From NCBI GenBank assembly GCA_002269645.1, contig NIVC01004916.1:1-31581 (forward strand): 31,581 nucleotides of DNA. Direction: 5' to 3'. This DNA is from Macrostomum lignano. Lineage: Eukaryota. The notes beneath the pieces were generated by a model, which saw only the letters and a program-made list of their open reading frames with translations, had not been told where the DNA came from and searched no databases. Each line of letters begins with the position of its first letter. Positions within the stretch are counted from its first letter, which is position 1. This document shows positions 3,591-31,570 of this stretch, piece by piece. The translations under genes were made by a program, and so were the position numbers.

Positions 3591-11716
<8,126 letters not shown>

Positions 11717-12511: not shown

Positions 12512-13788
12512 TACAGGGGAAGTAAAAAAGTAATGATAAGTCCCCCCCCAGGGTCAGGCACTTCTCCATGCGGTGTCGCCATCTCTCCAGGCCATACGCG
12601 TGGAACTCAGGAGGCTGTGCAGCAAGCCACAGTACAGTAGCCTTTTTGGCAGCCCCTGTCCTCATGTTGGACTCCTTTGTTCGCTTCCTTCAGCTTGGCA
12701 AACAAAAAAGTCTTAAGGAGCCAAATCAAAGCTATATGGAGGATGCTGGAGGATTTCCCAGCGGAAATCTCGCAGGGCTTCACGGCAGAGCCGAGAAGTG
12801 TGAGCTGGTGCATTGTCGTGGTGAAAGAGAATCCTACGGTGCAGCTTGCCATGTCGCTTTTTGGTCAGTTCGGAGTAAAACTTTTGCAAAATTAGCGACT
12901 CATATTAGGTGGAATTGCTGATAGTCTTCTGGCTTTCCAAGAAGTCCACCATCACCACTCCCTCAACATCCCAGAAGATGGTCGCCCAAGACCTTCGCTG
13001 CAGACCCTTCCGCACGGAACTTCTTGTTGGGGCCCGCTGAACCTCATGGCAGCCACTCCTTGGATTGGACCTTGGACTCGGGATTGTACTAAAATATCCA
13101 TGTTTAATACCCAGTCACTAGCGTTGGTAAAAGTTTTCTGATTCAGCGTCCAAGCAGTTCAGCAGGCTGATGGCGCACTCAGTGCGCTGAACCCGGTGTT
13201 CAGGCCGCAACAGCCGCGGGACCCAGCGGGCACTCAGCTTGCTCAGACCAAGAGTCCGTCACTTAATGGAGTGAGCACTGCCATGAGAGATGTCCACTTG
13301 GTCAGCAATATTGTCTATGGTCACGAGCCAATCCTGCTCAATCACCTGCTGCACAGCTGCAATATTTTCCTCTGTGCGCGATGTTTGTAGGCCTTAACTC
13401 GATCCCTCCACTGCATGGGCGTCCTTATTCGGACTCTCGGCCTCCCTTAAAAGCCTAAATCCAGCAGTAAATTGTTGGATCTGGTGGAGCAGTGTCCCCC
13501 TAGACCTTCTTCAAAGCGTCAATGATTTCAGCTGGCTACCAACTAAGTTTTACAAGAAACTTCACCTTATTGCGAGCTTCGATTTTTTATTTTTCCGTTG
13601 CTGAAAGGGTATACTGTGATTAGAGCGTCGATCATCATGCGCAGACATCAATCACTTTAGAAGAACCAAAACTCTGTCAAATAAATAACAAAAGATATTT
13701 TTCTCAAATGAAACCAGTTGCAGTTCAATACCTCTTATATTTTAGGCGTTACAGCAAACTTATCATTACTTTTTGACTTCCCCTCGTA
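12512..13788 (-). mobile_element. Mariner (DD34D) DNA transposon, full length (~1.28 kb), decayed
   Basis: TIRs are TAC-AGGGGAAGTAAAAAAGTAATGATAAGT (12512-12541) and the reverse complement TACGAGGGGAAGTCAAAAAGTAATGATAAGT (13758-13788), with TA at both ends and a transposase remnant inside. Confidence 0.93.
12535..13648 (-). pseudogene. Mariner transposase pseudogene (multiple stops and frameshifts)
   Basis: Manual minus-strand translation gives LSKLSARWVPRLL, YNPESKVQSKEW, ATIFWDVEGVVMVDFL, HHDNAPAH and HPPYSFDLAP*DFFLF. There are 34 residues between the second and third catalytic Asp. Confidence 0.93.
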
Positions 13789-15237
13789 GCCGTACAGCCA
13801 ATTGGAGTCATTTGAGGGAACCTATCGGCAACACGCATGGAGATAGCCGAATAGCCGTCAAAGATTTTTTCTAAACATATCCATTTTTTAGGAGTAAGGA
13901 ATCTGTGTCATGTCTGATATCTCGGTGGCAGTGCCTCTTGACATTCGTGTTACAAATAGCACAATTACGTATATATACTTTTCTAGCTAAACCTGTAATA
14001 GCCCGAAAATATACAAAGTTTTCAATTTTTAAATATACCTGAAAATATCAAAATTTACAGCAGTGAATTTAAAAAAACAACTAAATTTGTTAAACTGGAT
14101 AGTTTATTTAAACACTCGTCTTTTCCTTTTCTTATGCGGAAATAACAATTCGTAATAATAATAGTGTGATTGGTATACCGTGAGGCGTTTACGGAGCTCT
14201 CGCGACAGTATTTATCTATACAATAGTTGGCATGCTTCATCTTTCCTCAAGATAAGGGCCAGTGGCCTTCCCATATATTACCCTAAGCCCAATATAATGT
14301 GCAAAAAGTATTTTTCTTATCTTCGACATGTGTGAAAACTGAAAACATGTTTTAATTTTTAATTCTACTATAAAAGACCATAGGAGTCAAGACTAAGACT
14401 TTGATATAAGATATAAACTAGACTAAGACTAGGCAGCCCCCCCCCCAAGACTACTACTAACCACCAACACTAACACCAGTCTTTCAAATTCAAAAAACAA
14501 ATTTAATTTAAGTAAAGTCTTTATTCCTATTTCTAGGCTTATAAGAAATAGCATAGAGGCCTAACTTTGTTAAAGCATTATACATGACCCCTAACATAGG
14601 CCTACACTATGTTATAATAAAATTAACAAAGTTAATAGTGGTTATGCCCTTATGGTAACCCAAACAAAAGCTTTTTAATTAAAGCATAGTATATTAATCT
14701 CTATTGATTGTAGCTAATAGCCATTATAGTAGATAGTGTCTAGCATAGATTGGTGCTTAGTGGTATAGGCATAGTCTGGTATACTAGGCTATCTTAGTCT
14801 AGTATAAGAAAGGGGACACCTGGGTCCTGGTATAGTCTAGACCTTGGCTGCAATAGAAATGCATAAAAATCAATTATAAAAATATATAGGCCCTAATTTA
14901 AATAATTAATAATCTATTAATTTTAGACTATTTTGTAAATAAAATTTCAATATTTTTTAATTTCTTTATCATATAAATACCATAGTCTAGAAGGTAGCCT
15001 TTATGCCAAAATTTTCTGGTATATTTTTGCTCTTACTGACAATCTTGGCATGCATTTGGCATATATACGAGGGGTGTTGCAAAAGTTTCTAGACTAATGC
15101 TCTTCATGGTGATAATTTTAGTTTGATTTAGCAAAAAATTTAAATAGACAAACAGGCAACTTGTATTTTATAATATTATAAAAGTTTCAGAAAATTTGGA
15201 GTTGATGGTTAATAGTAATAAGCAATTGTACATTAGA

Positions 15238-18200
15238 TAGAGACTCCGGCGAGCTCCGAGTAGCGTGGTTGAAACTAGAAAAAACGTACATTTAGCACCT
15301 ACTTCAAACAGAAAACTAAGATAGAAAAAATATGACTGTGTAAAAACTGAAATACACAATAAAAAGCACAATAAATGTACTTCAAAATGAGTGCTCAAAC
15401 AGCTTCTAAAGTCGATCAGAGACAAAGTTATGGACAGTTAAAGTTTCATCATTTTTGCATTCCCATGCAAAATGAAGCCTATTTTACGGTAAAAATCGTG
15501 ACTTTGGAAAGTCTAATTTTTAATAACGAAATGACCGTTTTAAACAAAAATAATCAATATAAAAGCAATCTAGGCATAATTAAGTATCATTTTATGTAAA
15601 TTTCAGAAGAAAAAAATATTCCCTGTTGCCTACAGGGGTAGTCCAAATTTTTTTCTTCGATTTCTTTGTATCATCCGATTGCTGCACGGAATTCAAATGT
15701 AAATTTCTTTATTCTTTGTTGCAAGTGGAAGGACATGCAGAAAACCGTTTGGGATTACCTAGTCGCGCATTGCTACTAAGTTGATTCAAAGATCATAGTA
15801 AAATCAAAGTAAATGTCTATTTAAAATATATTTTTTATTTTTTTTGAGAAAAAAAGAGACGCACAAATACAGTTGATATTGACTTTCATACATAATTGCA
15901 TGACAAGTGTGAGGAATGAAAGTTCCTTCTGACAACTGACCGCGCACTTAGAAATATGAGCATCAATATGTTTCAGCGAGATTCAGGTAAACGGCAGGAG
16001 TAACTATGACTTTCAGTGCAAATGCAATTGCATCGTCACCTTATTAGTAGGAAAAATGAACATTTTTAAACTGTATTTTGTAAGTTAATTGCACTATGAA
16101 GTCAATACACACTGTCTTGAAATTCATTTCCATGATAACCATTACAACTGCTGTCTTCAAGATGTGTACTCTTCTATTCTATGTACACATTGTACATGGG
16201 GGTCATATGAGAGGCTTCCGTTGGAAAGCTGCTGGATATCAGACCCCAGCATAGTGATCCCAACAAGCGACCCCTGGCATTCGTCTGGTCAACGATGCAA
16301 ACTCTCAAAAATGTATGGTATGTATGGTACAGAGTACCGTGGAACTGTTGCAATAGGTTTATGCCTGTGCAATAAAAGCAGGTAGGTGATTTTTTATATG
16401 GCATTGAAAAGCAGCCATTTTGTTTGAATGTCTTCTGACTTATGCAGCTACTGAGTTAGCTAGATTCTTCATTGTAATAATGAGTGATTATTTTGGGTGC
16501 AAACTCTGAAGACTTAACATGCAAATACTAGCCTAGGTGCTAATCTGTGTGGGAGATAGTACATAATATGAATCTCAGGCAACTACGTTTTGTGAACAGA
16601 CCAAGCTGTGCTTGAAAAACTTTGTTAAACAATGAATACACTTAGTCATCATCATCATCATAATCGTCATCGTCATCAGAGAGAACATTCAATTCGCCAG
16701 CCAGGTAGTCCTTGTTGAGGTCATAGGTGTACTCCCCTTCAAAATCATCGAACACAACCTTGAACTCCTGGCTGAGAATGTCCCTGCTCTGGCAGGTTGA
16801 TGGCAGTCGCTGGAGGACGTGGCCTGGTATCCAGTCCTCCCCATCTGTGAAGCAGAACTTCATCTCGATTCTTCTGCTCACCAGATCGGGGAGGTTGGCC
16901 AGCGTCCGCTGATTGGTGGTCTCGTCAATGGCGTCGCCCTCATCCTCGTGTCTTCTTCCTCGTCCTCGTCCTCGTCCTCCTCCTTGACCTCGTCCTCCTC
17001 CTTGACCTCGACCTCGTCCTTGACCTCGACCTCGTCCTTGACCTCGACCTCGTCCGCGTCCGCGACCGCCGCCTCGTCCACCAAGGCCAGGCCCAGCTTG
17101 AGCAGCCACAGCTCCTGCATCTTGAATCCGTTGACGACGCTGCAGCCTGTCAGCAATGGCAGTGCGGACTCGCTCCTTGCGCTCGCGAGCATCCAGGAGG
17201 CCGGACGGAGGCACGGTGGGCGCATCGGCACCCTTTTGCTGGTCCTGTAGTTCCACTATCTGCAGAACTTCACGCAGTTGGCTTCGCAGTTGAGGCACAC
17301 TGCGCTTGACACCAGCCGCGGAGAAGTTGAGCAGGCTGGCCTTGTCCTTGGGCAGGTGGATCTCTACAAAATATTACATGAAACATAATTTTCATGCTAA
17401 GCAGTGAGCAAACAGACACATTTTTCTGCCCACACGTACTGGTCGCTTTGTGCAGTTGCAGCTGTGCTTTGATGGCCTTCTCGTGCTGGTCAGGGGCTAG
17501 TTGGTGCAGCACAGCGTCCATCCTGGAGATGGTTGGCCAGAGTCCGCCGTAGGCCTCGATGACACGGAGAATGGATCGGATGCTCTCGGCGTTCGAGTCC
17601 TTCTTGCGCTGCTTTTCAGCTAGCTTGGCGCGGAGAATCTCCTGGCGGCAGCTGCGCAAGGCGTCGGCGCTCTCCTTCCCTCGCTTTTCGAGCTGAGGGA
17701 CCAGCTTCCGTGCCCTGGTAAGAAGGAGGTCCTTCTCGCGCTCCGTCTTGTCGGCCAGCCACTCGGACGTGCAGTTATAGCCGAAGAGCACAAGCGACTC
17801 GCGCGCAAGAGGGCGCATGTTGGGCCTGTCTGCGACGCACTTATCCAGCATCCCGAAGCCTCGCTCGACTGCTACGTTGTCCTTAGGCGCAGATGAGACA
17901 AGCTGGGCAACTTCTGGCGTGAGCTGCCGCAGAGTGCCCCCAGGCAGGTGGTCACGCACCTCTCTCTCTAGCAACACAAGCATGTGTGTCGCCATGATCT
18001 GAAGTGGTGTTTTAAAGTATAAAAGCTACAATCTATACATTCGTTAATGTTCATTGATACTGTACTGTACTTTGTGACTAATCAGCGCATTCATAATTCA
18101 AAACCCATATTTACCTGCAGAGCCTGGCCGACAATCTCGTTCTCCAAGGCTGTCAGCTCAGACGTCAGCGCCGCCCAGATGTCCTGCAGCTGGATGTCCC

Positions 18201-21200
18201 GGAGAACCGTCTGGGCCAGTTCGGGAAATGGGCCAATCATGCTGCTGGCCACAGTAACGCCCTCGGACGATGACAGCTGGCGCAGCCAATTGCAAGCGCG
18301 CTCATAGCGTTCGTTCATGTCCGTGAGGGTCACGTCTCGGCAGCGCAGGAGCACCCACAGTGGCCGGATTAGCAGAACGTCAGCAATTCCGAGTGCACGG
18401 CAGCCACTCAGCAGCAAATCAGATGCCAAGTCAGCCTGCACTGCGATCAGCAGGCGGTTGCTGCAGGTGTACTCAGCCAGGAACTCGGACAGGCGGTCTC
18501 GCTGCCAGAAAATGTTTCCCCCGTTGGGAAATGTGATGTAGGCGCGGTTGCCACGGAAGTCGTCCAAACGAAGGGACGGTGCGCCCTTCGACTCCAGATA
18601 CGTTTGAAGCGGAATCGCAACGCCACACTGTTCACTGCCCAGGGCATGGAACGCCTTGCAGACGGTGCGGATTAGACGCTGCGTGCCAGATTCAGCTTGG
18701 GACGGGCGGAAGCCAGGGAGGGCAGCAGATCCGACGGCCTCTGCAGCCATGCAAGTCTCCCACTCGCGCAGCGCAGCTTCTGCGGCAGCAGCAAGATTTA
18801 CAATCACATGCATGCCGCAGAACAGTGCAGTCACAGGTGGAGGTGGGTTCACGCCTTGCTGGGTTGCCAGCTCCTGCCGCATCTCGTTGAGCAGTACGTT
18901 GAGGCACTTGTTGACCACGTGTCGGTCAGTCATTAGGAAGTTGACGCGTGCCAGTAGATTACACTTCAGGCGGCGTCTCTCTTCGTCGCTCGAGTGGGCA
19001 AGAACTACCGAGCAAAACAGATCGACCAGCTCTTCCACCGAGTAGTCCAGTTCGCGGGCGTAGATGTTCGCGGTGCCACCCTCGACCTCGCGAAGAGAAA
19101 CAGCCATCGGGCGGCTGTCCCCAGTGTCAACCTATGAATGGTGCATATGTAATACAAAGCATATTGTGAATATAAAAGTTCATTCTTATTAACTAAAAGT
19201 TCTCTTTTTGTGAATATTAATAATAATAATTAATTATTAAATTCATTTCCTTCCTTTAAGTCCAATTATTTGTCAATATGCACGAAAATGCATTACTCAA
19301 GTTTACCTGGTAGGCGGCATAGTGTCGGCCCTTCTTGCTGGTAGCATCATGCAAGATCGTTATTGGTCGGTCCTCCTTTGCCCCCTGATGCAGCAGCTTC
19401 TCCATCGCGCTCGCCTTAGCTAGGCAGCTGCCAAGGCTGTAGCTCAAAGCACTGACCTGCGAACGCGACGGAAGCGCCAAGTTGCCGGCGTCGATGCCAA
19501 CGAGGTCCGTGAGGACGCGTCGAATCGCTGGCTTGACGTGCTGCACAGGGACGTGGCAGTCCAGCACCAAGTGCATACAGGTGCTGATGACCTGGTTCGT
19601 GTACTGCTGTCCTCCACTCGGACGTGATGTCTTGGTGATGATGGAGCCCACACTCTGCTGTTGAAGCTTCTCGTTTGCTTCACAGATGAGGCCGTGCAAA
19701 CTGCGGGTATCGGCTCTGAGCTCCTTCACTCTCTCAGTGGCGAGCTGACTTGACTTGCTACGGCTGTTGGCACGCCTCAAGCGCAGGTCACGCCTACGGC
19801 TGGCAGATGATGCAAAGGCCTGCCGCTTGGCATGCTCAGCACGCAGCTTGTCGTATCTGCCTTGTAGCCGTCTGAGACGCTGATTCCAGACGCGAATTTC
19901 AGGCCGCTTGGCTAGCTTAGCCCTCAGTCGCCGGACTTCAGCTTTCTGCTCGGCCAGGGCGGCCTTCAGCTGCGCAACTTTGGCTTTGGCCTTGTGAACT
20001 CGCAGATCAACAATGGCTGCCTCGATGCCGATCTTCTCTTCGACAGAGACACTCATGCCAGACTGCTTCGATTGGTCAAGCCTTGCTGGAGTCGGTGAGT
20101 TCGAGGCCATTGGCATTGGTGATGTTGACAAAGGCACAATCGGCATTGCCATTGGGTTCAACAGCTGTTGCAATGCCGCTGGAGGTTCGAATTCTCGTGC
20201 CAAATGGGCCTCATATGTCGAGATGCCATCACCAGACGCAGCCTCACGAGTGTGACTCTTCAGCAGAATTTGGGCTTCTCTCTCTAAATCCTTAATCCTT
20301 TTCAGGAGTGCCTTCTTCAGATTGTCAGAGACAAACTCCATCAAGTGAGAAGGTAGCCCAACCAGTTTCAGAATCGGCTGGGCCTTGTCAAGTCCTGTAT
20401 GGGCCTGGCTGCTGGACTTGAGATGAGTAATCACCTGGCCATTGGTGACTGGGCGAATGGATGATCTGGACCTGCCACGAAGCCGAAGGTTGGGCTTGGT
20501 CTTGGGTGTGGAGGATGTGGCCATAGATAGTATTGTTTAGTCAGTCAGTACTCCAGTAGTCTACTCCAGTGGCAGCTGGAATGGTAACATATTGATTGAC
20601 TTACTGAGTTACTCAGGTGATTCAGTGCCAAATAAGTATGAATATGTCTCATTATCAATAATGAGACATATAATTTATGTCTCAGTTATCAATAGTTTAT
20701 AATATATTTGTAATATTTATAATAATATAAATAAACTTATAATATATTATTTATTATGATACATTTAATTTTAATTTATAATAATATAATAAATATAATT
20801 TATTATGTTTTTTAAATTTAGTATAATAAATTTATAATAATTTATCAATAAAATCAAATTGTAGCTTTAAAAAGCATATGTATTGCCCCCGTGACCACAC
20901 ACAGTTATCATTTTTCCTATACTTAGTGCAAAATAACTTAAGAAGAAAGGACACCACTGACTTGCCTTGTACATAGCAAGCAAGGCAAGAAAAAAAGCAA
21001 AAAAATGACACCAAGAACAGCAAAATTGGTAATACAAAACGAAAGTTCTTGCTGGTCAACCACGAAAAAAACAAATATTTTGGAAAAAATGATCACAGCC
21101 CATAATGCAAATATCCCATAAGAGAATCCGCAAAAAATGGTCACTAAAATGGCCACAACTTTCTTATTCCTTTACCAAATCTAATAATATAATACTTTTT

Positions 21201-21282
21201 GCAAACAAGAAAGTAAGATCTATCAGATAAGCATAAAAAATCTGTCAGACTTTTAACTTTCAAAATCTCACTGGAGTCCCTA
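15238..21282 (-). mobile_element. ~6.0-kb DNA transposon (hAT-like DDE/CxxH) nested in the 3' UTR of mariner 2
   Basis: 16-bp imperfect TIRs: TAGAGACTCCGGCGAG (15238-15253) and the reverse complement TAGGGACTCCAGTGAG (21267-21282), 13/16 identical. ATTAGA lies at 15232-15237 and 21286-21291. An intact transposase gene lies inside. Exact termini and TSD are uncertain. Confidence 0.65.
16642..20524 (-). CDS. Intact 4-exon transposase-like protein, ~1171 aa: N-terminal helical/coiled-coil region, RNase-H-fold DDE core with CxxH, RG/RGG box, Spin/Ssty-type Tudor-like domain, poly-Asp tail. Exons: 20524-19307, 19131-18115, 17998-17440, 17363-16642.
   Basis: Four consecutive minus-strand ORFs join through GT..AG introns of 175, 116 and 76 nt (phases 0,0,1) with no stop. 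Motifs by manual count: LHDATSKKG (D393), FLMTDRH (D475), FCGMH (C511/H514), KDNVAVERGFG (E790). This layout matches the D..D..CxxH..E arrangement of hAT/P/MULE-type transposases. Confidence 0.85.
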
Positions 21283-21328
21283 CTGATTAGATTATTTATA
21301 GTCATGAAATACAATTTCCAAGTTATAG

Positions 21329-22550
21329 CTACCAATCACTGTCACTGTCGCTTCTATTGCCAGATGCGTCCATAGACTGATTGCTGGCTCGCTCCATGTA
21401 TTCGCCATTTATGGAGATGCATTTTTGGTAGCGCTCAATCAGCTTGTCAAAGCCAGACTCCCAGATTGGCATCTTCATTGGGCCAAAGAGATGAAAATCG
21501 GCAATGGCAAGATCGGGACTATAGCATACGTGCGCAACCTTGGGAATCACCCGGCCATTTCTATTGGCAACACACACATGTAAGTCACTATTGGCTGAGA
21601 GCAGTCACGTGACTACTTTTCTGTCCAATAGTGACATACATGTGTGTGTTGCCAATAGAAACGGCCGAGTGAATCCCAAGGTTGCGCCCAAGCATGGACT
21701 GTAGGCTGGGTAGTTCAGCAGTCAGAAGCCTAGCTCTTCCGCCTTGGCTTGCATGCAAGCGGCAGCATGAGGACACACATTGTCCCAGAGAATGAAGGGT
21801 TTCTGGCACATAATGCGACACTTACTCAGAACGGCATCACGCAGGCGGTGGAGCTGATTGATGACATAGTTGGCATTGATGGTCTGACCTTGGGGCAGGT
21901 GGTCAACCATTAGCACACCACGAGCATCAAACCACATAGTGCACATGACACTCTGCATCCATGCCGACTTCATGGCCTTCTGGTGCAGGTGGCTTCCTTT
22001 TGGGCCCCAATGCATAGTCTGCTGTTTTGTCTGCGTTGAAACATGGGCAGCAGTGTTTCATCCATTGTGATGAGCAGCTCTTTGAACTTGCTGTCACCCA
22101 GTTCGTTCTATAATGCCCAGTTCTCTAGCGAGTAACGCACGCATGCTTTCTTGTGCTCTTCCGTCAGTTCACGTGGCACCCACTTTGCACAAATCTTGGA
22201 GTAGCCTTGGCATTGCAGAATGCGGCACATAGATGAGTAGTGGATTCCAACAAACTCTCCATTTCACGCATGCATGCAGATGGATTTTCTTTCAAATAGT
22301 CAAGCACAGCAGTTGTTTTGTCATGACCTGTGCTCGAGCGAGGATGCCCAGATCAAGAGGCATTAGCGATGTTGGTGACACCATCAGCAGCGAGTCAGTG
22401 ATGCTCAAACACTTAAGTGCAACCCAGGGCATGAACACCGAAAGCAAGACGCACCTCATCAAAGGTCTGTATTGCTGTTTTGCCCTGTTGTTGGCATGCC
22501 ATGATAAAGTGGCGCTGGCTTTCCTTAGACCCAAACTCCGATGGATTCTT
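21329..22550 (-). pseudogene. Mariner transposase pseudogene, interrupted by a MITE and with an internal deletion
   Basis: Motifs seen: YSKICAKWVPRELT, ITMDET, MWFDARGVLMVDHLPQGQTINANY, LWDNVCPH, and YPAYSPDLAIADFHLFGPMK (after removing the MITE), then GFDKLIERYQKC and GEYM. D-D spacing is 34. The segment between FGPMK and GFDKL is shorter than in typical mariners. Confidence 0.92.
21525..21696. mobile_element. 172-bp palindromic MITE with 8-bp TSD (hAT-type)
   Basis: ~63-bp arms with 4 mismatches (GCGCAACCTTGGGAATCACCCGGCC...ATTGG / CCAAT...GGTTGCGC) and CAT...ATG termini. It is flanked by GACTATAG (21517-21524) and GACTGTAG (21697-21704). Removing the insert and one TSD restores YSPDL in frame. 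Confidence 0.88.
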
Positions 22551-24103
22551 CGGTCAACTCAGTTTCGCTCACTTTGGTTTGTGAAAAATCGTGTCAATAG
22601 CTTCAAAGGGTTGCAACTTATTTTGGCCCTGATGTAACCTGTGATTGACTAAGCTGCAAAAATTTTTAGGAAAGGTTTTTTTCTATGGCTGAATACAAGT
22701 ACCATAGACATCAATTTTCAGCCAAATCAAACACGAATTGTCACCAGGATTAGCATTAGTCCAGAAACTTTTGCAATACCCCTTGTATTTAGAATTTTCA
22801 GGTTCTAATGAAATATACACAATTGCATACAAAAATAGCCAAGTTCAAGGCTAATGTAATCATGTAGTAATGTAACCAACCAATATTAAAAGCTCTTTAA
22901 AAACAATCAAAAACTTGATAAAATAGAAAATATTAACTTAATCATAAGAAAAACAAAATTAAAACAAAGAATAGTAGTTTTTAGCAAAAAAATAGCCATT
23001 TTAAGGTTTAGTAAAACAATTAAATTCCTAAAAATATATTTTTTTAAAAAAAATTTTAAACAGTTTTAGGTGTGGTAAAACATTTTTTTATTTTATATTT
23101 GTATAAAATTAAAAAAACATTATTTTTCATTCTGGCATATACCTGCCATAATCCAGACTATGGCATAAATAGAAATTTTTTTAAGGTAAAATATTTGTAT
23201 CATTTATATTAATTTTATTATGCCATTGGTAATGTTATTAAAAATTTAGCAATATTGCAAAAATAACATTTTATCAAATTTTGGCTTATAAGATACCAAA
23301 ATTGACTAAATTTTGGCACAAAGGTAAAACTCTTTCCTAACACATGGTAAACATATTTTTGACCAAAAAAATCAAAGCACAATATGTATATAAGAATTAA
23401 GTCACAAATATAAATATAGCAAACTATAAGCTATATTTATGAATTCTTTCTTAGAAAATATAGTATTTAAATTTCTGCTCAAAGTTATATTTTTGTTTAA
23501 ATGTTCTAAAATCAAATAATATTCTACAAAATAAAAGTTTGTTTTAACTATATCATTTGACAGACATGCTCAACCTCCAAAATTTGGTCGGTTGTGCAAC
23601 TTAGTTTTAACAAAAATGCGACAGTTTTTGGTAAAAATGCAACTTATATAAAAGAAGCCCTAAAGCAAAATTAATGCAACTTTGGGTAAACAGTAGGAGT
23701 AACTTGACTGTCTTATTAAGGCCAAATGCCTCATCATCTACTTAGTACTACTTTGGTATTTATTCAGATAGGCATTTTTGCAACTTACCTTGATTGGCTG
23801 CTAAATTGGTTGGCCGGATCAGCCAACTTGGCCAACTGTTGTGCATGTATGTCATTTGAACTATATAAATAGGAGCCCAGAGTAGGCCAAGTAAATAGCA
23901 ACTTAAGATTATGACAATTTGTCTATTCAACATCTTGCAAGCTTGAGCTAACAAAGTCATTTGCATATTAAATTGCTATTTGCAGTATTTAAAAGACTTA
24001 TTCATTTCTTAGAGCAAAACCCTCAGTTGGGAATATTAGAAATCCACTAAATGCAAGAATCGCCTTGGCATTAATCCCAAATGACAATATTACTGCCAAG
24101 ATT

Positions 24104-27100
24104 ATGAGTTGGCATCAAGCATTGGCACTGGGGCTGCTGCTGGCCTGGCAGTTGGCTGGCACAGCTCTGGCACAGACTGGTACCGGCTGTCCATTCACTG
24201 GAGACGACAGGCGCTACATAATGCCGCTATTCTCAATTGATTCCGGCCAAGACACAACCATGTTCATCACTGACAACACTCTGACCTATAGGCAAGGCTT
24301 CCTGCAGTCATACAAAGCCACTTGCGTCCGCGTGCTCGATAGGAATAGGAAAGAGCCCGAACAGCAGTCCAAGTGGAACATGCTGGTGCTCTATCGCAAT
24401 GACACAACATCCGGGAGCCGGGAGATTTACTTCTGCGCCAAATTCTATTGGCAATCGATTAATATAATCCAGTATCAGCTGAGCGGAGTCTACGCCACCA
24501 CAGCCAGCGATGCCGCTTCCAGGTGCACCATCTTTGAGTCTAATAATCGGTATAGCTTTGCAGTTGTCGGCTTCTCCCAGCAATACCAGATTTACAATTG
24601 TAAAACCATCCTGGAGGGCGTGTTCTGGTTCACTTATCAGCTCAAGGATTCTTCTAGGACGCCGTGCGACGCTCTGACTAATAAGATTAAGGCCTGCCAG
24701 AGGGCCGGCTCGCAGGAGCGAGACAGCTACATTGCTACATTCAACTGGGGCCAGTGCCCCGGCCTGGCGGCGACCAAGGACACAGGCCAGCAGAACTATT
24801 ACTGCTACGGAATGTGGACAGACAATAATAATAATGTTTACGCCGCGGTTGGCATGGACCAGGCCGATACTAAGTTCAAATACCGCTGCCTGGTTACTAG
24901 GAAGGATCAGAACGAGCGTAGTATACTTTACCGCTGGGGCATGACCGTCGATGCCGACTGTTCTACCTTGAAATCGCCAGACGAATCCCCGATGAAGCTG
25001 ATACTGCGGCCTACGCTGGACTCCACTGATCAGGTGCCCCAGCTGCGGCCGGGTTGCAATCTGCCTAAGAATTTCACCGGCGTCTGGTTCCAGCCAGCCG
25101 AGTACCAGACGGACGTGTACATCAATGCCACCACCATCAAGTTGCGGCGTCAGCTGAACCAGTACCAGTGGGAGGAGGTGTACTTTGTCTGCAGACAGGT
25201 ACGACTGGCATCTGCTCACTTTATTTCTATTTATTCCACTGCAGGGGATAGCAGTGCTACTGAATAGCCACAGCAGGGGTAGCAGTGCTACTGAATAGCC
25301 ACAGCAGGGGTAGCAGTGCTACTGAATAGCCACAGCAGGGGTAGCAGTGCTACTGAATAGCCACAGCAGGGGTAGCAGTGCTACTGAATAGCCACAGCAG
25401 GGGTAGCAGTGCTACTGAATAGCCACAGCAGGGGTAGCAATGCTACTGAATAGCCACAGCAGGGGTAGCAGTGCTACTGAATAGCCACAGCAGGGGTAGC
25501 AGTGCTACTGAATAGCCACAGCAGGGGTAGCAGTGCTACTGAATAGCCACAGCAGAGGTAGCAGTGCTACTGAATAGCCACAGCAGAGGTAGCAGTGCTA
25601 CTGAATAGCCACAGCAGAGGTAGCAGTGCTACTGAATAGCCACAGCAGGGGTAGCAGTGCTACTGAATAGCCACTGCAGGGTAGCAGTGCTACTGAATAG
25701 CCACAGCAGAGGTAGCAGTGCTACTGAATAGCCACAGCAGGGGTAGCAGTGCTACTGAATAGCCACAGCAGGGGTAGCAGTGCTACTGAATAGCCACAGC
25801 AGAGGTAGCAGTGCTACTGAATAGCCACAGCAGGGGTAGCAGTGCTACTGAATAGCCACAGCAGGGGTAGCAGTGCTACTGAATAGCCACAGCAGGGGTA
25901 GCAGTGCTACTGAATAGCCACAGCAGGGGTAGCAGTGCTACTGAATAGCCACTGCAGGGGTAGCAGTGCTACTGAATAGCCACAGCAGGGGTAGCAGTGC
26001 TACTGAATAGCCACAGCAGAGGTAGCAGTGCTACTGAATAGCCACAGCAGGGGTAGCAGTGCTACTGAATAGCCACAGCAGGGGTAGCAGTGCTACTGAA
26101 TAGCCACAGCAGGGGTAGCAGTGCTACTGAATAGCCACAGCAGAGGTAGCAGTGCTACTGAATAGCCACAGCAGGGGTAGCAGTGCTACTGAATAGCCAC
26201 AGCAGGGGTAGCAGTGCTACTGAATAGCCACTGCAGGGGTAGCAGTGCTACTGAATAGCCACTGCAGGGGTAGCAGTGCTACTGAATAGCCACAGCAGGG
26301 GTAGCAGTGCTACTGAATAGCCACAGCAGGGGTAGCAGTGCTACTGAATAGCCACAGCAGGGGTAGCAGTGCTACTGAATAGCCACAGCAGAGGTAGCAG
26401 TGCTACTGAATAGCCACAGCAGGGGTAGCAGTGCTACTGAATAGCCACTGCAGGGGTAGCAGTGCTACTGAATAGCCACTGCAGGGGTAGCAGTGCTACT
26501 GAATAGCCACAGCAGAGGTAGCAGTGCTACTGAATAGCCACTGCAGGGGTAGCAGTGCTACTGAATAGCCACAGCAGAGGTAGCAGTGCTACTGAATAGC
26601 CACAGCAGAGGTAGCAGTGCTACTGAATAGCCACAGCAGGGGTAGCAGTGCTACTGAATAGCCACAGCAGGGGTAGCAGTGCTACTGAATAGCCACAGCA
26701 GGGGTAGCAGTGCTACTGAATAGCCACAGCAGGGGTAGCAGTGCTACTGAATAGCCACTGCAGGGGTAGCAGTGCTACTGAATAGCCACAGCAGGGGTAG
26801 CAGTGCTACTGAATAGCCACAGCAGAGGTAGCAGTGCTACTGAATAGCCACAGCAGGGGTAGCAGTGCTACTGAATAGCCACAGCAGGGGTAGCAGTGCT
26901 ACTGAATAGCCACAGCAGGGGTAGCAGTGCTACTGAATAGCCACAGCAGAGGTAGCAGTGCTACTGAATAGCCACAGCAGGGGTAGCAGTGCTACTGAAT
27001 AGCCACAGCAGGGGTAGCAGTGCTACTGAATAGCCACTGCAGGGGTAGCAGTGCTACTGAATAGCCACTGCAGGGGTAGCAGTGCTACTGAATAGCCACA

Positions 27101-29639
27101 GCAGAGGTAGCAGTGCTACTGAATAGCCACAGCAGGGGTAGCAGTGCTACTGAATAGCCACTGCAGGGGTAGCAGTGCTACTGAATAGCCACAGCAGAGG
27201 TAGCAGTGCTACTGAATAGCCACAGCAGGGGTAGCAGTGCTACTGAATAGCCACTGCAGGGGTAGCAGTGCTACTGAATAGCCACTGCAGGGGTAGCAGT
27301 GCTACTGAATAGCCACAGCAGAGGTAGCAGTGCTACTGAATAGCCACAGCAGGGGTAGCAGTGCTACTGAATAGCCACAGCAGGGGTAGCAGTGCTACTG
27401 AATAGCCACAGCAGGGGTAGCAGTGCTACTGAATAGCCACTGCAGGGGTAGCAGTGCTACTGAATAGCCACAGCAGAGGTAGCAGTGCTACTGAATAGCC
27501 ACAGCAGGGGTAGCAGTGCTACTGAATAGCCACAGCAGGGGTAGCAGTGCTACTGAATAGCCACAGCAGGGGTAGCAGTGCTACTGAATAGCCACTGCAG
27601 GGGTAGCAGTGCTACTGAATAGCCACTGCAGGGGTAGCAGTGCTACTGAATAGCCACAGCAGAGGTAGCAGTGCTACTGAATAGCCACAGCAGGGGTAGC
27701 AGTGCTACTGAATAGCCACAGCAGGGGTAGCAGTGCTACTGAATAGCCACTGCAGGGGTAGCAGTGCTACTGAATAGCCACTGCAGGGGTAGCAGTGCTA
27801 CTGAATAGCCACTGCAGGGGTAGCAGTGCTACTGAATAGCCACAGCAGGGGTAGCAGTGCTACTGAATAGCCACAGCAGGGGTAGCAGTGCTACTGAATA
27901 GCCACAGCAGAGGTAGCAGTGCTCTACTGAATAGCCACAGCAGAGGTAGCAGTGCTACTGAATAGCCACAGCAGAGGTAGCAGTGCTACTGAATAGCCAC
28001 AGCAGGGGTAGCAGTGCTACTGAATAGCCACAGCAGAGGTAGCAGCTACTGAATAGCCACAGCAGAGGTAGCAGTGCTCATCTACAAAACACAAGAAAAC
28101 AATTGAATTCCCACAGTCTCAGGAGTCTCGCTACTTAATGGCCGTGGTGACCGAGGGCCGCTGCGACGTGGACTACATCTGCATGCACTTTATGCCTCGC
28201 CACCACAACATCATCAGATTTCGCATGTCCAAGCCCATTAAGCACGATCCAAATCACAATGAGGACAGTAATTATATGAGTAGGCGATTTCGCGAGGCCT
28301 GCGACTGGTTCTCCTTCACTATGGACCAGGTTGAGTGGACCTACGAGTACTTTGTACTCAATCCGCCTGTGCCTATTAACTGTCCTATTCAAGGCCGCTT
28401 TAAATTCAATATGGTTGGCCAGGAGTCCGAGTTCTATTTTACCAAGATTCCTGCCGGAGTGACGCCTCGGCCTCGGTGAGGGCTTCAATGCTTTTGTGGG
28501 AGTTTTATTGGGTCCCAAACACATGTGGTTGGCCTTGATCATCTAGGACATTCCTGACAACTCTTATTGTAGTCAGCCATAGTAATGAAGTTCTATTTTT
28601 TTATTGATTTTTTAGTTAACCTTGAGATTGAGCATGAGAAATCCGAAAAAATTAAGTTCGTGACCTTGAGATTCAGGGGAATCCCTACAAGTAAGTTTGG
28701 GTGACCTTGAGATCCAGGAGAATCCCTACCAAATAAGTTTAGGTGACCCTGAGATCCTGGGTATCCCTACCAAATAAGCGGGTGACCTTGAGATCCGGGG
28801 GAATCCCTACCAAATAAGCGTGGGTGGCCTTGAGATCCGGGGAATCCCTACCAAATAAACGTGGGTGACCTTGAGATCCGGGGGAATCCCTACCAAATAA
28901 GCGTGGGTGACCTTGAGATCCGGGGGAATCCCTACCAAATAAGCGTGGGTGACCTTGAGATCCGGGGAATCCCTACCAAATAAGCGTGGGTGGCCTTGAG
29001 ATCCGGGGGAATTCCTACCAAATAAGCGTGGGTGACCTTGAGATCCTGGGAAATTCCGGAAGAAATCTTAGAAATTCGATTTGAACCAACTGCAGAGTTC
29101 AAGTGGTCTGCGATCAGTACTGGGAGTCCGACATGCACGCCTGCATCGGCGAGAACAAGCAGCTCAGTCTGGACGTTCAACGCTGCATGCGGCTGGATCA
29201 CATCGGCCGGCCGCTGTCCGAGTATGACGTGCCCGACAATATTCTCACCTGCGTCGGCTACTGGATGGAGGATGCCAAATCCTACATGATAACCTTTGAC
29301 CCGGCCGATCCCGTGGTTGGCAATTTCCGCTGCTGGATCTACAGGCGGACCGGCCTGCGCACGTACCGGATGTCGCGCAGCATGGCCTCTAAGTGCATGC
29401 CGGACCAGACCAGCTCCAGCGCCTATCCATCAGAGAGTGCCAGCCTCATGCTCGAGCTGACTGACAACGAGCGGCTATTCGATCAGTGCCCGATGAAATT
29501 CGATTTCGGCAAAGATCCGTACACCAACACCTTCCAATTGGAGGTATTTGCCCACGCTGGCAGGCTTAGCCCGACTATGCGACCGGCACTGCTAGCCTGT
29601 CTGGTTGCCATGGTTACTGCTGCTATGCATTCCATCTAG
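24104..29639 (+). CDS. Secreted, probably GPI-anchored, Cys-rich protein of unknown function, ~665 aa; exons 24104-25198, 28117-28475, 29096-29639
   Basis: Signal peptide MSWHQALALGLLLAWQLAGTALA and hydrophobic C-terminus RPALLACLVAMVTAAMHSI. GT..AG introns of phase 0 and 2 join three ORFs without a stop. There is an internal duplicated architecture (YYCYGMW..KYRCL vs LTCVGYW..NFRCW). From memory it resembles the invertebrate DUF7042/7043/7044 family; this was not checked. Confidence 0.85.
25236..28079. repeat. 31-bp minisatellite (CAGCAGGGGTAGCAGTGCTACTGAATAGCCA), ~91 units, filling intron 1 of the secreted-protein gene
   Basis: Period of 31 measured (25261 to 25292). Three main variants occur (CAGCAGGGG, CAGCAGAGG, CTGCAGGGG). 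Confidence 0.98.
28658..29052. repeat. 41-42 bp minisatellite (GTGGGTGACCTTGAGATCCGGGGGAATCCCTACCAAATAAGC), ~9-10 units, in intron 2
   Basis: Periods of 42, 42 and 41 measured at 28861, 28903, 28945 and 28986. Confidence 0.93.
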
Positions 29640-30564: not shown

Positions 30565-31570
30565 AATAATCGACAATCTATGGGATTCGCCAACAATCTT
30601 AAGAATCAACAATCTATGGGAATCGCCAACAATCTCCTTGAGAATCAACAATCTATGGGATCGCCAACAATTTAAGAATCAACAATCTATGGGAATCGCC
30701 AACAATTTCCTTAGAATCAACATCTATGGAATCGCCACAATTTCCTTGAGAATCAACAATCTATGGAATCGCCAACAATTTCCTTGAGAATCAACAATCT
30801 ATGGGAATCGCCAACAATTTCTTGAGAATCAACAATCTATGGGAATCGCCAACAATTTCCTTGAGAATCAACAATCTATGGGAATCGCCAACAATCTCCT
30901 TAAGAATCAACAATCTATGGGAATCGCCAACAATTTCCTTGAGAATCAACAATCTATGGGATTCGCCAACAATTTCCTTAGAGAATCAAAATCTATGGGA
31001 TTCGCCAACAATTTCCTTGAGAATCAACAATCTATATGGAATGCCAACAATTCCTTGAGAATCAACAATCTATGGGAATCGCCAACAATTTCCTTGAGAA
31101 TCAACAATCTATGGGATTCGCCAACAATTTCCTTGAGAATCAACAATCTTATGGATTCGCAACAATTTCCTTGAGAATCAACAATCTATGGGATTCGCCA
31201 ACAATTTTGAGAATCAACAATCTATGGGAATTCGCCAACAATTTCCTTGAGAATCAACAATCTATGGGATTCGCCAACAATTTCCTTGAGAATCAACAAT
31301 CTATATGAAATCGCCAACAATCTCCTTGAGAATCAACATCTATAGGAATCGCCAACAATTCTCCTTGAGAATCAACAATCTATAGGAATTGCCAACAATC
31401 TCTTGAGAATCAACAATCTATAGGAATGCCAACAATCTCCTTGAGAATCAACAATCTATAGAAATCGCCAACAATCTCCTTAAGAATCAACCATCTATTG
31501 GAATTCGCCAACTATCTCTTTGAGAATCAACAATCTATGGAATCGCCAAAATCTCTTGAGAATCAACAGC
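30565..31570. repeat. 39-bp minisatellite (GAGAATCAACAATCTATGGGAATCGCCAACAATTTCCTT), ~26 units with many 1-nt indels, reaching almost to the window end
   Basis: Direct tandem repetition. The 13-aa periodicity explains the ORFs 30801-31308. Confidence 0.95.

Follow-up and report, generated by a model that had tools for sequence, protein, structure and literature searches.

Background

Can an animal DNA transposon that moves by cut-and-paste carry its own reader of chromatin marks? The question is raised by a gene of the flatworm Macrostomum lignano that lies on the minus strand at positions 16642-20524 of contig NIVC01004916.1 (GenBank assembly GCA_002269645.1), a stretch of 31,581 nucleotides that was analyzed as a whole and is called the window below. 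The gene encodes a transposase of 1171 amino acids whose C-terminal end is very probably a Tudor-like domain of the Spindlin (Spin/Ssty) type. Nature's clearest cases of targeted integration are transposable elements (TEs) with a chromatin reader of their own, the chromoviruses being the textbook example. Among DNA transposons, the fusions to chromo or PHD domains listed so far are few; the Spindlin-type Tudor described here belongs, as an ancestral and conserved part, to a family of DNA transposases that is widespread in animals. M. lignano has established transgenesis and, if the proposal developed below is true, would allow a test of whether chromatin state guides the target choice of a transposon. 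Should the domain read a histone mark, the protein would represent a compact natural "reader plus cut-and-paste enzyme" design, useful for the study, and possibly for the engineering, of chromatin-directed integration, and its closeness to the second Spindlin repeat would make the origin of the Spindlins testable.

A Spindlin-type domain at the C-terminus of the transposase

Minus-strand translation of 16675-16884 yields LVSRRIEMKFCFTDGEDWIPGHVLQRLPSTCQSRDILSQEFKVVFDDFEGEYTYDLNKDYLAGELNVLSD, identical to the peptide quoted in the preliminary description of this locus, which had recognized in it a Spin/Ssty-type Tudor-like domain ending an intact transposase. The peptide is the C-terminal portion of a 243-codon open reading frame (ORF) at 16645-17373 of the minus strand. 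When the last 96 amino acids were searched with phmmer against 177,635 PDB sequences, only Spindlins were returned (Spindlin-1 and Spindlin-3, E = 0.03-0.4), with the whole domain aligned to repeat 2. A family profile was built from 47 homologous C-terminal domains, none of them from a Spindlin, and rebuilt in a second version without flatworm sequences. The 47-domain profile matches human SPIN1 at E = 1.2e-34, with its three repeats at 40, 60 and 17 bits, repeat 2 being the best; SPIN2-4 come after SPIN1, and the next non-Spindlin match follows at only E = 1e-4. The flatworm-free profile matched exactly one of the 570 six-frame ORFs of the window, and that ORF was this one (42.9 bits, E = 5.6e-13). 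A five-sequence profile run against 1.84 billion protein representatives gave 784 matches at E ≤ 1e-3; details of domain matches below rest, where so stated, on the best 150 of these 784. Those best 150 include vertebrate Spindlins (E = 2e-12 to 6e-10) along with many transposase C-termini.

Pfam was less informative for the window copy. The preliminary description had proposed PF02513 as a check on the 16675-16884 peptide, and here it failed: neither the window exons nor the 70-residue peptide gave a Pfam match, and PF02513 was missed even at E ≤ 10 (its gathering score is 25 bits), because single-sequence Pfam searching is too insensitive for this copy. The full-length relative P0149 clears PF02513 (Spin-Ssty) with 47.9 bits against the cut-off of 25, and relatives P0010 and P0154 lie below the threshold at about 18.5 bits. 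A word-indexed protein search with a three-sequence alignment of flatworm domains returned no match.

Structure prediction agreed with the profiles. Single-sequence AlphaFold modeling of the C-terminus was unusable, with a predicted local distance difference test (pLDDT) score of 44; with the family alignment, the score rose to 80.9 and the model showed four strands, a helix and a fifth strand. In a Foldseek search of the PDB with this model, ranks 1-42 were all Spindlin1, 2B or 4, with a query-normalized template modeling (TM) score of about 0.6 and, in the best cases, a root-mean-square deviation of 2.1-2.5 A over about 70 columns; SGF29, a reader of trimethylated histone H3 lysine 4 (H3K4me3), and then a SAWADEE domain are listed next. 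The Tudor-like fold expected in the preliminary description was thus recovered by AlphaFold and Foldseek, and its assignment to the Spindlin type was borne out by the profiles, by Pfam on a relative and by the model. As far as sequence can tell, the resemblance to SPIN1 repeat 2 is beyond chance. The window protein has a single Spin/Ssty repeat at the end of a chain of 1171 amino acids, as opposed to the three tandem repeats of the Spindlins (SPIN1-4, Ssty) of about 260 amino acids. We regard a Spindlin-type Tudor domain fused to the transposase of a transposon as very well founded.

Gene structure and protein architecture

The gene model has four exons on the minus strand, all joined at canonical GT-AG junctions, and encodes the 1171 amino acids without an internal stop. 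Exon 1 (19307-20524, amino acids 1-406) covers the N-terminal region, with a long coiled-coil-like stretch, and includes the first catalytic Asp, D393; exon 2 (18115-19131, amino acids 407-745) carries the second, D475, and a CxxH motif; exon 3 (17440-17998, amino acids 746-931) carries the candidate catalytic residue E790 and the helical region after it. Exon 4 (16642-17363, amino acids 932-1171 plus stop) holds a conserved linker, an Arg-Gly (RG) repeat, the Tudor-like domain and an acidic tail, all within a single open frame, in keeping with the earlier placement of the domain in the last exon of an intact gene. Residues joined at the exon 3/4 junction align with paralogues and with intronless homologues. 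From N- to C-terminus, the protein thus comprises a coiled-coil-like region, the catalytic core, a helical linker, the RG repeat, the Tudor-like barrel and the acidic tail.

Within exon 4, the RG repeat GRGGGRGRGRGRGQGRGRGQGRGRGQGGGRGQGGGRGRGRGRR occupies 16951-17079 (minus strand). It recurs at the equivalent place in both divergent Macrostomum paralogues (loci L001/L002 and L003), and it was not found in the non-flatworm relatives that retain the domain. The Tudor-like domain itself spans 16678-16893 (minus strand) and consists of strands b1 (RIEMKFCF), b2 (GEDWIPGHVLQR), b3 (FKVVF) and b4 (EYTY), a short helix (LNKDYLA) and strand b5 (LNVL). The acidic tail, DDDDDYDDDDD, occupies 16645-16677 (minus strand) and is followed directly by the stop codon (16642-16644); L001 (NDWDSDD) and L003 (SDDE) likewise have an acidic tail after the domain.

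Database proteins of M. lignano are 100% identical to the 1171-residue model over most of its length, and paralogues are 41-58% identical. Two public models, P0001 and P0003, remove an in-frame 291-nucleotide GT...AG segment at 16845-17135 (minus strand) as an intron, an excision that would take away the RG repeat and strand b1. The public models for the 16642-20524 gene (P0001-P0005) are fragmented or chimeric. Several are named "ANK_REP_REGION domain-containing protein", and the transposase itself has no ankyrin repeat region; P0002 (1655 amino acids) is fused to a duplicated downstream stretch with a precomputed match to PF13716.

Age and spread of the fusion

The domain is not peculiar to the window copy. 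It is found at the 3' end of divergent paralogous elements in the same genome, with 40% identity in L001/L002 (E = 3.5e-16) and 50% in L003 (E = 2.5e-20), and it also occurs in P0009-P0011, P0141, P0149, P0154 and P0075. Proteins P0009-P0011 are about 30% identical over the core and end in the same C-terminal module; in P0009, core and domain are encoded by one intronless ORF. Among the best 150 domain matches, transposase sequence precedes the domain in 54 or more, and 102 of 114 single-domain matches end within five residues of the C-terminus. Compared with the non-flatworm proteins P0009-P0011, the window protein is 24-30% identical in the domain and 25-28% identical over the whole protein; the likeness of the two figures agrees with a single ancestral fusion and not with capture on several occasions.

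Named relatives include an uncharacterized priapulid protein, LOC106815158, and sturgeon proteins, one of which is automatically annotated as "Spindlin-W". The family therefore ranges at least over flatworms, priapulids and ray-finned fish, and is both larger and wider in distribution than the preliminary description had foreseen. The suspicion that unannotated homologues exist elsewhere proved correct, and core and Tudor domain do co-occur in other animals, since relatives of about 30% identity over the core, among them P0009-P0011 and the priapulid and sturgeon proteins, share the C-terminal domain. Seven members (P0018, P0041, P0043, P0048, P0062, P0091 and P0159) carry two tandem Spin/Ssty-like domains, and it is the second domains of such members (for example, residues 83-153 of P0041) that are closest to SPIN1 repeat 2, at 42% identity. 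We conclude that the fusion dates back to the ancestor of a metazoan-wide family of transposases.

A separate set of matches (P0027, P0036, P0067, P0108, P0126 and P0138; E = 1e-18 to 1e-10) consists of unrelated proteins with three to seven tandem Tudor/Agenet-like repeats. These are not transposase fusions; P0027 ends in an AP2-like DNA-binding segment.

Conservation of ligand-contact residues

The roles of F141, W151, Y170 and Y177 (the aromatic cage), E142, D184 and D189 in SPIN1 are known from crystallography (PMC3967050). D184 forms a salt bridge to H3R2, with D184A costing about 90-fold, and D189 contacts the alpha-amine of H3, so that the two acidic residues clamp H3 Ala1 and Arg2 (PMC3967050). 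SPIN1 residues were mapped onto the family through a hidden Markov model alignment, and the window and its flatworm paralogues were compared with 135 other members.

The F141 position is Phe in the window and in L003 (L001 is unaligned there) and Phe in 123 of the 135 others. At the Y170 position, the window and both paralogues have Phe, and 131 of 135 members have Tyr. The Y177 position is Tyr in the window, Val in L001 and Phe in L003, and is aromatic in 60 of 135. D184 is Asp in the window, in both paralogues and in 132 of 135, and D189 is Glu in the window and Asp in the paralogues, matching the G-D/E-L motif of the family consensus. Three of the four cage positions of the window domain (F, F and Y) are therefore in register. 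The exception is W151, which is Ile in the window, Asn and Glu in the flatworm paralogues, and Tyr or Phe in 127 of 135 other members; a conserved Trp stands one residue before this position in all three flatworm lineages.

The preliminary description had assigned the cage by eye as F for F141, F for Y170, Y for Y177 and a W offset by one from W151, and HMMER reproduced all four assignments. The offset of the Trp is thus real, and it is also a genuine caveat, as the register of SPIN1 W151 itself holds I, N or E in flatworms. On these alignments, the flatworm pocket appears largely preserved, with one wall uncertain.

The mobile element and its insertion sites

The transposase gene lies within a proposed full element of about 6.0 kb at 15238-21282 (minus strand). 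Its 5' terminal inverted repeat (TIR), TAGGGACTCCAGTGAG, at 21267-21282 (minus strand), is perfect, matching 16 of 16 positions at both ends of a second element, L003:17477-19484, and is related to the ends of L001/L002 (TAGGCTGTCCAGTGAG) and of L003-A (TAGGGTGTCCAGTGAG). A candidate degenerate 3' TIR is located at 15238-15253 (minus strand), where the plus strand reads TAGAGACTCCGGCGAG and 13 of 16 positions match the 5' TIR (three mismatches); such a match is expected by chance about 0.01 times per 3-kb stretch in one orientation, by our estimate. The right orientation and distance of this sequence led to the proposed limits of 15238-21282, and noncoding similarity 3' of the gene (window 16197-16307) to the L001 element puts the end near 15300. 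We infer the 3' boundary in this way because the target duplication at the window copy is imperfect.

Mobility is clearest in the related copies. The element that encodes P0004 is present at two loci, L001 and L002, as a 7.3-kb block that is 99.9% identical between them and whose flanks are unrelated. In the loci compared, four complete elements carry 16-bp TIRs that follow the pattern TAGGNNNTCCAGTGAG, except that the right ends of L001/L002 differ from it at one position (TAGAC...), and the end pattern of the M. lignano copies can be written TAGG[GC][ATG][CG]TCCAGTGAG. Three of the four are flanked by perfect 7-bp target site duplications (TSDs), namely CCTATAA, GTATAAT and TTAAAAG. The last of these belongs to L003:17477-19484, a 2-kb non-autonomous element whose perfect 16-bp TIRs are identical to the window 5' TIR, which suggests recent mobilization by a transposase of the window's subfamily. 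The paralogous elements thus show the TIRs, the TSDs and the copies in unrelated contexts by which class II cut-and-paste transposons are recognized; the window copy itself has a perfect 5' TIR, a 13/16 3' TIR and an imperfect duplication. TIRs were not identified in the 6-kb contig of P0009. The non-autonomous element at L003 falls inside the limits of a DnaJ gene model beginning at 16370.

Several other boundaries were considered and set aside. A 79-nucleotide inverted repeat at 15062/22791 was rejected as the TIRs of the element because it is a mariner-type terminus (TA + ACGAGGGGTGTTGCAAAAGTTTC) accompanied by mariner remnants at 21329-22097. A candidate at 14980/23163, produced by a brute-force scan for TIRs with an 8-bp TSD, was dropped once the real TIRs were known from other copies, and an 8-bp TSD at the ends of L001/L002 was replaced by 7 bp on comparison of the four elements.

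The window copy appears to have been inserted into a mariner-like element with termini at 15062 and 22791, now split into 15062-15237 and 21283-22791. The window contains exactly two copies of the mariner terminus, TA+ACGAGGGGTGTTGCAAAAGTTTCTAGACTAATGC, inverted relative to each other, and degenerate mariner transposase ORFs are found at 21329-22097 on the minus strand. The search for an empty site of this host element found no other mariner copy among the sequences compared. A 63-nucleotide inverted duplication (21532-21687, 94% complementary, 30-nucleotide spacer) lies inside the mariner remnant, and a further mariner ORF fragment is present at 12713-12889.

Catalytic core and superfamily assignment

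The invariant core residues, taken from alignment A2 and also visible in all full-length relatives, are D393, D475, C511xxH514 and E790. On the minus strand, the codon of D393 is at 19346-19348 (in ILHDATSKKG), that of D475 at 18925-18927 (in FLMTDRHVVNK), the CxxH motif (CGMH, C511-H514) at 18808-18819, and the codon of E790, the candidate catalytic Glu, at 17864-17866 (in NVAVERGFGMLD, NVAVERGF). Together with the behavior of the mobile element, the invariant D, D, CxxH and E uphold the identification of the protein as a transposase of the DDE (Asp-Asp-Glu)/CxxH type. Pfam scans of 17 family members gave no match for the core at E ≤ 10, hAT families included, and register only the Tudor domain and an N-terminal coiled coil. 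No PDB transposase was matched at E ≤ 10 with profiles A2 and A6 (the 17-sequence profile included) or by phmmer with P0075. The UniProt name of P0006, "DUF659 domain-containing", was not borne out by our own Pfam scan.

The preliminary description had called the transposase hAT-like. There are likenesses to hAT elements (Ac, hobo and Hermes) in the order D ... D ... CxxH ... large insertion ... E, in the ER-x-F context of the Glu near the C-terminal end of the core, and in the short TIRs starting with TAG. The spacings of D393, D475 and E790 are similar to those of D180, D248 and E572 in Hermes. However, the TSD is 7 bp in 3/3 clean cases (L001, L002 and L003-B) rather than 8 bp, the eighth base matching in only one of the three. 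No PF05699 dimerization domain, DUF659, DUF4371 or BED domain was matched in the 17 members (E ≤ 10), Hermes was not matched in the PDB, and no zinc-finger DNA-binding domain is detectable. Although the DDE residues, the CxxH and the large insertion before the Glu have hAT-like spacing, this pattern is common to P, Kolobok and MuDR; the CxxH motif is shared with those superfamilies as well (PMC3706591). Given a non-specific CxxH, a TSD of 7 bp and the failure to detect any hAT domain, the element was not filed as hAT, and the earlier label, which found no Pfam or PDB transposase match, was not retained. The element is a DDE transposon of the CxxH group, with its superfamily unassigned.

The Dada superfamily was considered on account of the 7-bp TSD. 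Dada elements lack TIRs, have DxxH and N- and C-terminal zinc fingers, and insert into small-RNA genes with a 6-7-bp TSD (PMC3706591). The present element was separated from them by its TIRs, by CxxH instead of DxxH, by having no zinc fingers and by its targets of AT-rich non-genic DNA; the length of the TSD is the sole point of agreement.

Repeats elsewhere in the window

Outside the element, much of the window is tandem repeat. Two 10-mer arrays stand in opposite orientation, (TCTGCCTCAC)n with about 132 copies at 4437-5811 and its reverse complement (GGCAGAGTGA)n with about 103 copies at 6766-7810. Between them lies a (TATC)84 array at 6214-6545, and together they make up a satellite palindrome on the kilobase scale, with extreme GC skews of -0.64 and +0.60. 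A 31-bp satellite, CCACAGCAGGGGTAGCAGTGCTACTGAATAG, fills 25236-28078 with 92 copies at 97% identity. Other satellites are located at 337-683 (28 bp), 10040-10712 (23 bp), 11204-11440 (21 bp), 28660-29054 (42 bp) and 30568-31568 (39 bp), and (ATAG)160 is found at 8759-9398.

Discussion

We propose that the C-terminal Tudor-like domain of this cut-and-paste transposase tethers the enzyme to a methylated histone tail and thereby biases integration, a statement that, taken as a whole, we hold to be evenly balanced between right and wrong. The core would cut and join DNA, and the Tudor-like module would bind a methylated histone tail as a tether, holding the transposase complex on marked nucleosomes. 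Such tethering would bias the integration site as the chromodomains of chromoviral integrases do, and by analogy with them the element may be steered to marked chromatin. The N-terminal tail of H3 is the leading candidate ligand because the equivalents of D184 and D189 are kept; sequence would point to this tail and cannot name the exact mark on it.

Several observations weigh against this proposal, beginning with the protein itself. The fold of the catalytic core is supported by motifs and by the behavior of the element, with neither a profile nor a structure match, and the window domain taken by itself falls under every Pfam threshold. In L001/L002, the RG-plus-Tudor part, at about 13900-14115, is shifted to the -1 frame with respect to the part before it, so that the annotated protein reads through into a spurious 90-residue tail; the shift may be either a shared frameshift or an indel of long-read assembly. 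The three repeats of SPIN1 form one integrated globule (PMC3967050), whereas the window protein has a single repeat. As for the pocket, the W151 position is I, N or E in three flatworm lineages against Y or F in 127 of 135 other members, and the displaced Trp would face the opposite side on a regular strand; the cage of the flatworm copies may thus have gaps or an altered shape. Only 60 of 135 family members have an aromatic residue at the fourth cage position, and the L001 lineage has Val. Finally, the five insertion sites at hand are AT-rich, four of them intergenic or within annotated gene spans and the window copy inside a mariner-like element, a sample that carries no information on chromatin marks.

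Other functions for the domain can be imagined. It may read methyl-arginine in RG repeats, either in its own adjacent repeat or in RG-rich host proteins such as PIWI or Sm. Methylated RG motifs are classical ligands of Tudor domains (SMN/TDRD Tudors), and each of the three divergent Macrostomum lineages has an RG repeat immediately before the domain; reading of its own repeat would mean auto-inhibition, or multimer or condensate assembly for synapsis. SPIN1 repeat 1 itself reads H3R8me2a (PMC3967050). The non-flatworm relatives, however, are without the RG repeat, so that RG cannot be the ancestral ligand of the family, and the domain is closest to SPIN1 repeat 2, with its K4me3 pocket, and keeps the D184 and D189 equivalents for the H3 N-terminus. 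We consider methyl-arginine reading unlikely for these reasons. We also think it improbable that the flatworm domain has lost reader activity and become a structural, dimerization or docking module. The I, N or E at the W151 equivalent and the Val at the fourth cage position of one lineage would suit such a loss, and Spindlin repeat 3, which docks SPINDOC, offers a comparison, being a non-reader docking surface (10.1101/2021.03.07.432812). The equivalents of F141, Y170, D184 and D189 are nonetheless kept across flatworm paralogues only 40-50% identical in the domain, which is the pattern expected for a pocket under selection.

Two further explanations concern the gene rather than the domain, and both are poorly supported. 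Were this a host gene, domesticated from a transposase and now serving as a chromatin factor, its introns, its intact frame of 1171 amino acids, the degenerate 3' TIR with an imperfect target duplication, and its listing in public databases as ordinary protein-coding genes would be natural. Against this stand the 99.9%-identical paralogous copies at two loci whose flanks are unrelated, the TIRs and perfect 7-bp duplications of these copies, the 2-kb non-autonomous element with TIRs identical to those of the window, the several divergent lineages in one genome, related clusters that are multi-copy in other genomes, and the invariance of the catalytic residues; domestication is accordingly a very doubtful explanation. 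The fusion might instead be a gene-model artefact, the Tudor-like ORF being on a separate transcript or spliced away, as the 291-nucleotide in-frame GT-AG segment that P0001/P0003 remove, with the RG repeat and strand b1, and the other frame of the Tudor part in L001/L002 could suggest. But linker, RG repeat, domain and acidic tail share one uninterrupted frame and one exon in the window and in L003, the intronless ORF of P0009 spans both core and domain, and transposase sequence precedes the domain in the share of the best 150 matches given above. An artefact is, to our mind, hardly credible.

Tethering to a methylated histone tail by a Spindlin-type domain thus remains our preferred reading, and it invites comparison with the Spindlins themselves (SPIN1-4, PF02513). 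The likeness extends from profile homology to the four core strands plus one extra and to the motif x-V/I-E/x-H/M-x-F ... W-x(1,2)-G-x-V ... F/Y-x-V/I-x-F/Y ... Y-x-L-x-x-D-Y-x-x-G-D/E-L-x-V/I, and the window keeps the equivalents of F141, Y170, Y177, D184 and D189. The difference lies in one repeat ending a 1171-residue transposase versus three repeats in a 26-kDa globule, and in the non-aromatic W151 position of the flatworm copies. The identity of SPIN1 repeat 2 reaches 42% with family domains and is 21% with SPIN1 repeat 1; by this measure, Spindlin repeat 2 falls within the family's own range of pairwise identity. Because this is so, because two-domain members exist and because the family spans flatworm, priapulid and fish, one may go further and see in these elements an unclassified, metazoan-wide cut-and-paste superfamily (7-bp TSD, TAGGN... 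TIRs, a core invisible to Pfam and PDB) whose ancestral C-terminal reader is the source of the vertebrate Spindlins, through domestication and triplication of the transposase Tudor domain. We put this forward as a speculative and rather doubtful extension; a transposon origin of the Spindlins, or capture in the reverse direction, is a testable idea.

Literature searches that combined Spindlin or Spin-Ssty with transposase or transposon turned up no relevant description of such a fusion, and an unpublished Repbase entry is possible. The earlier statement that no characterized hAT-like family is known to have this fusion accordingly stands as regards the fusion, none having been found in the literature searched, and falls as regards the hAT label. 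A Spin/Ssty Tudor domain on a DNA transposase is thus a fusion for which that literature has no earlier description, although fusions of reader domains to TEs are an established theme. The Ectocarpus element Gypsy-10_Ec32 is likewise a TE with a C-terminal Tudor-type reader, presented by its authors in 2025 as the first TE in which a Tudor domain was reported (PMC12477816); it differs in being a long terminal repeat retrotransposon of brown algae, as against an animal cut-and-paste DNA transposon with a Spindlin-type Tudor. The hAT-Chromo and PHD fusions of sponges and cnidarians were found by a screen for Pfam co-occurrence (Grau-Bove et al.), and a screen of that kind would miss the present family, since its core has no Pfam model. 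Those fusions and the chromoviruses, in which a Ty3/Gypsy integrase carries a C-terminal chromodomain, place the reader where the window transposase has it, at the C-terminal end of the enzyme by which the element itself integrates, and would share with it the proposed logic of tethering; they are set apart by the type of reader (chromo or PHD versus Spin/Ssty Tudor), by the enzyme and by the class of element.

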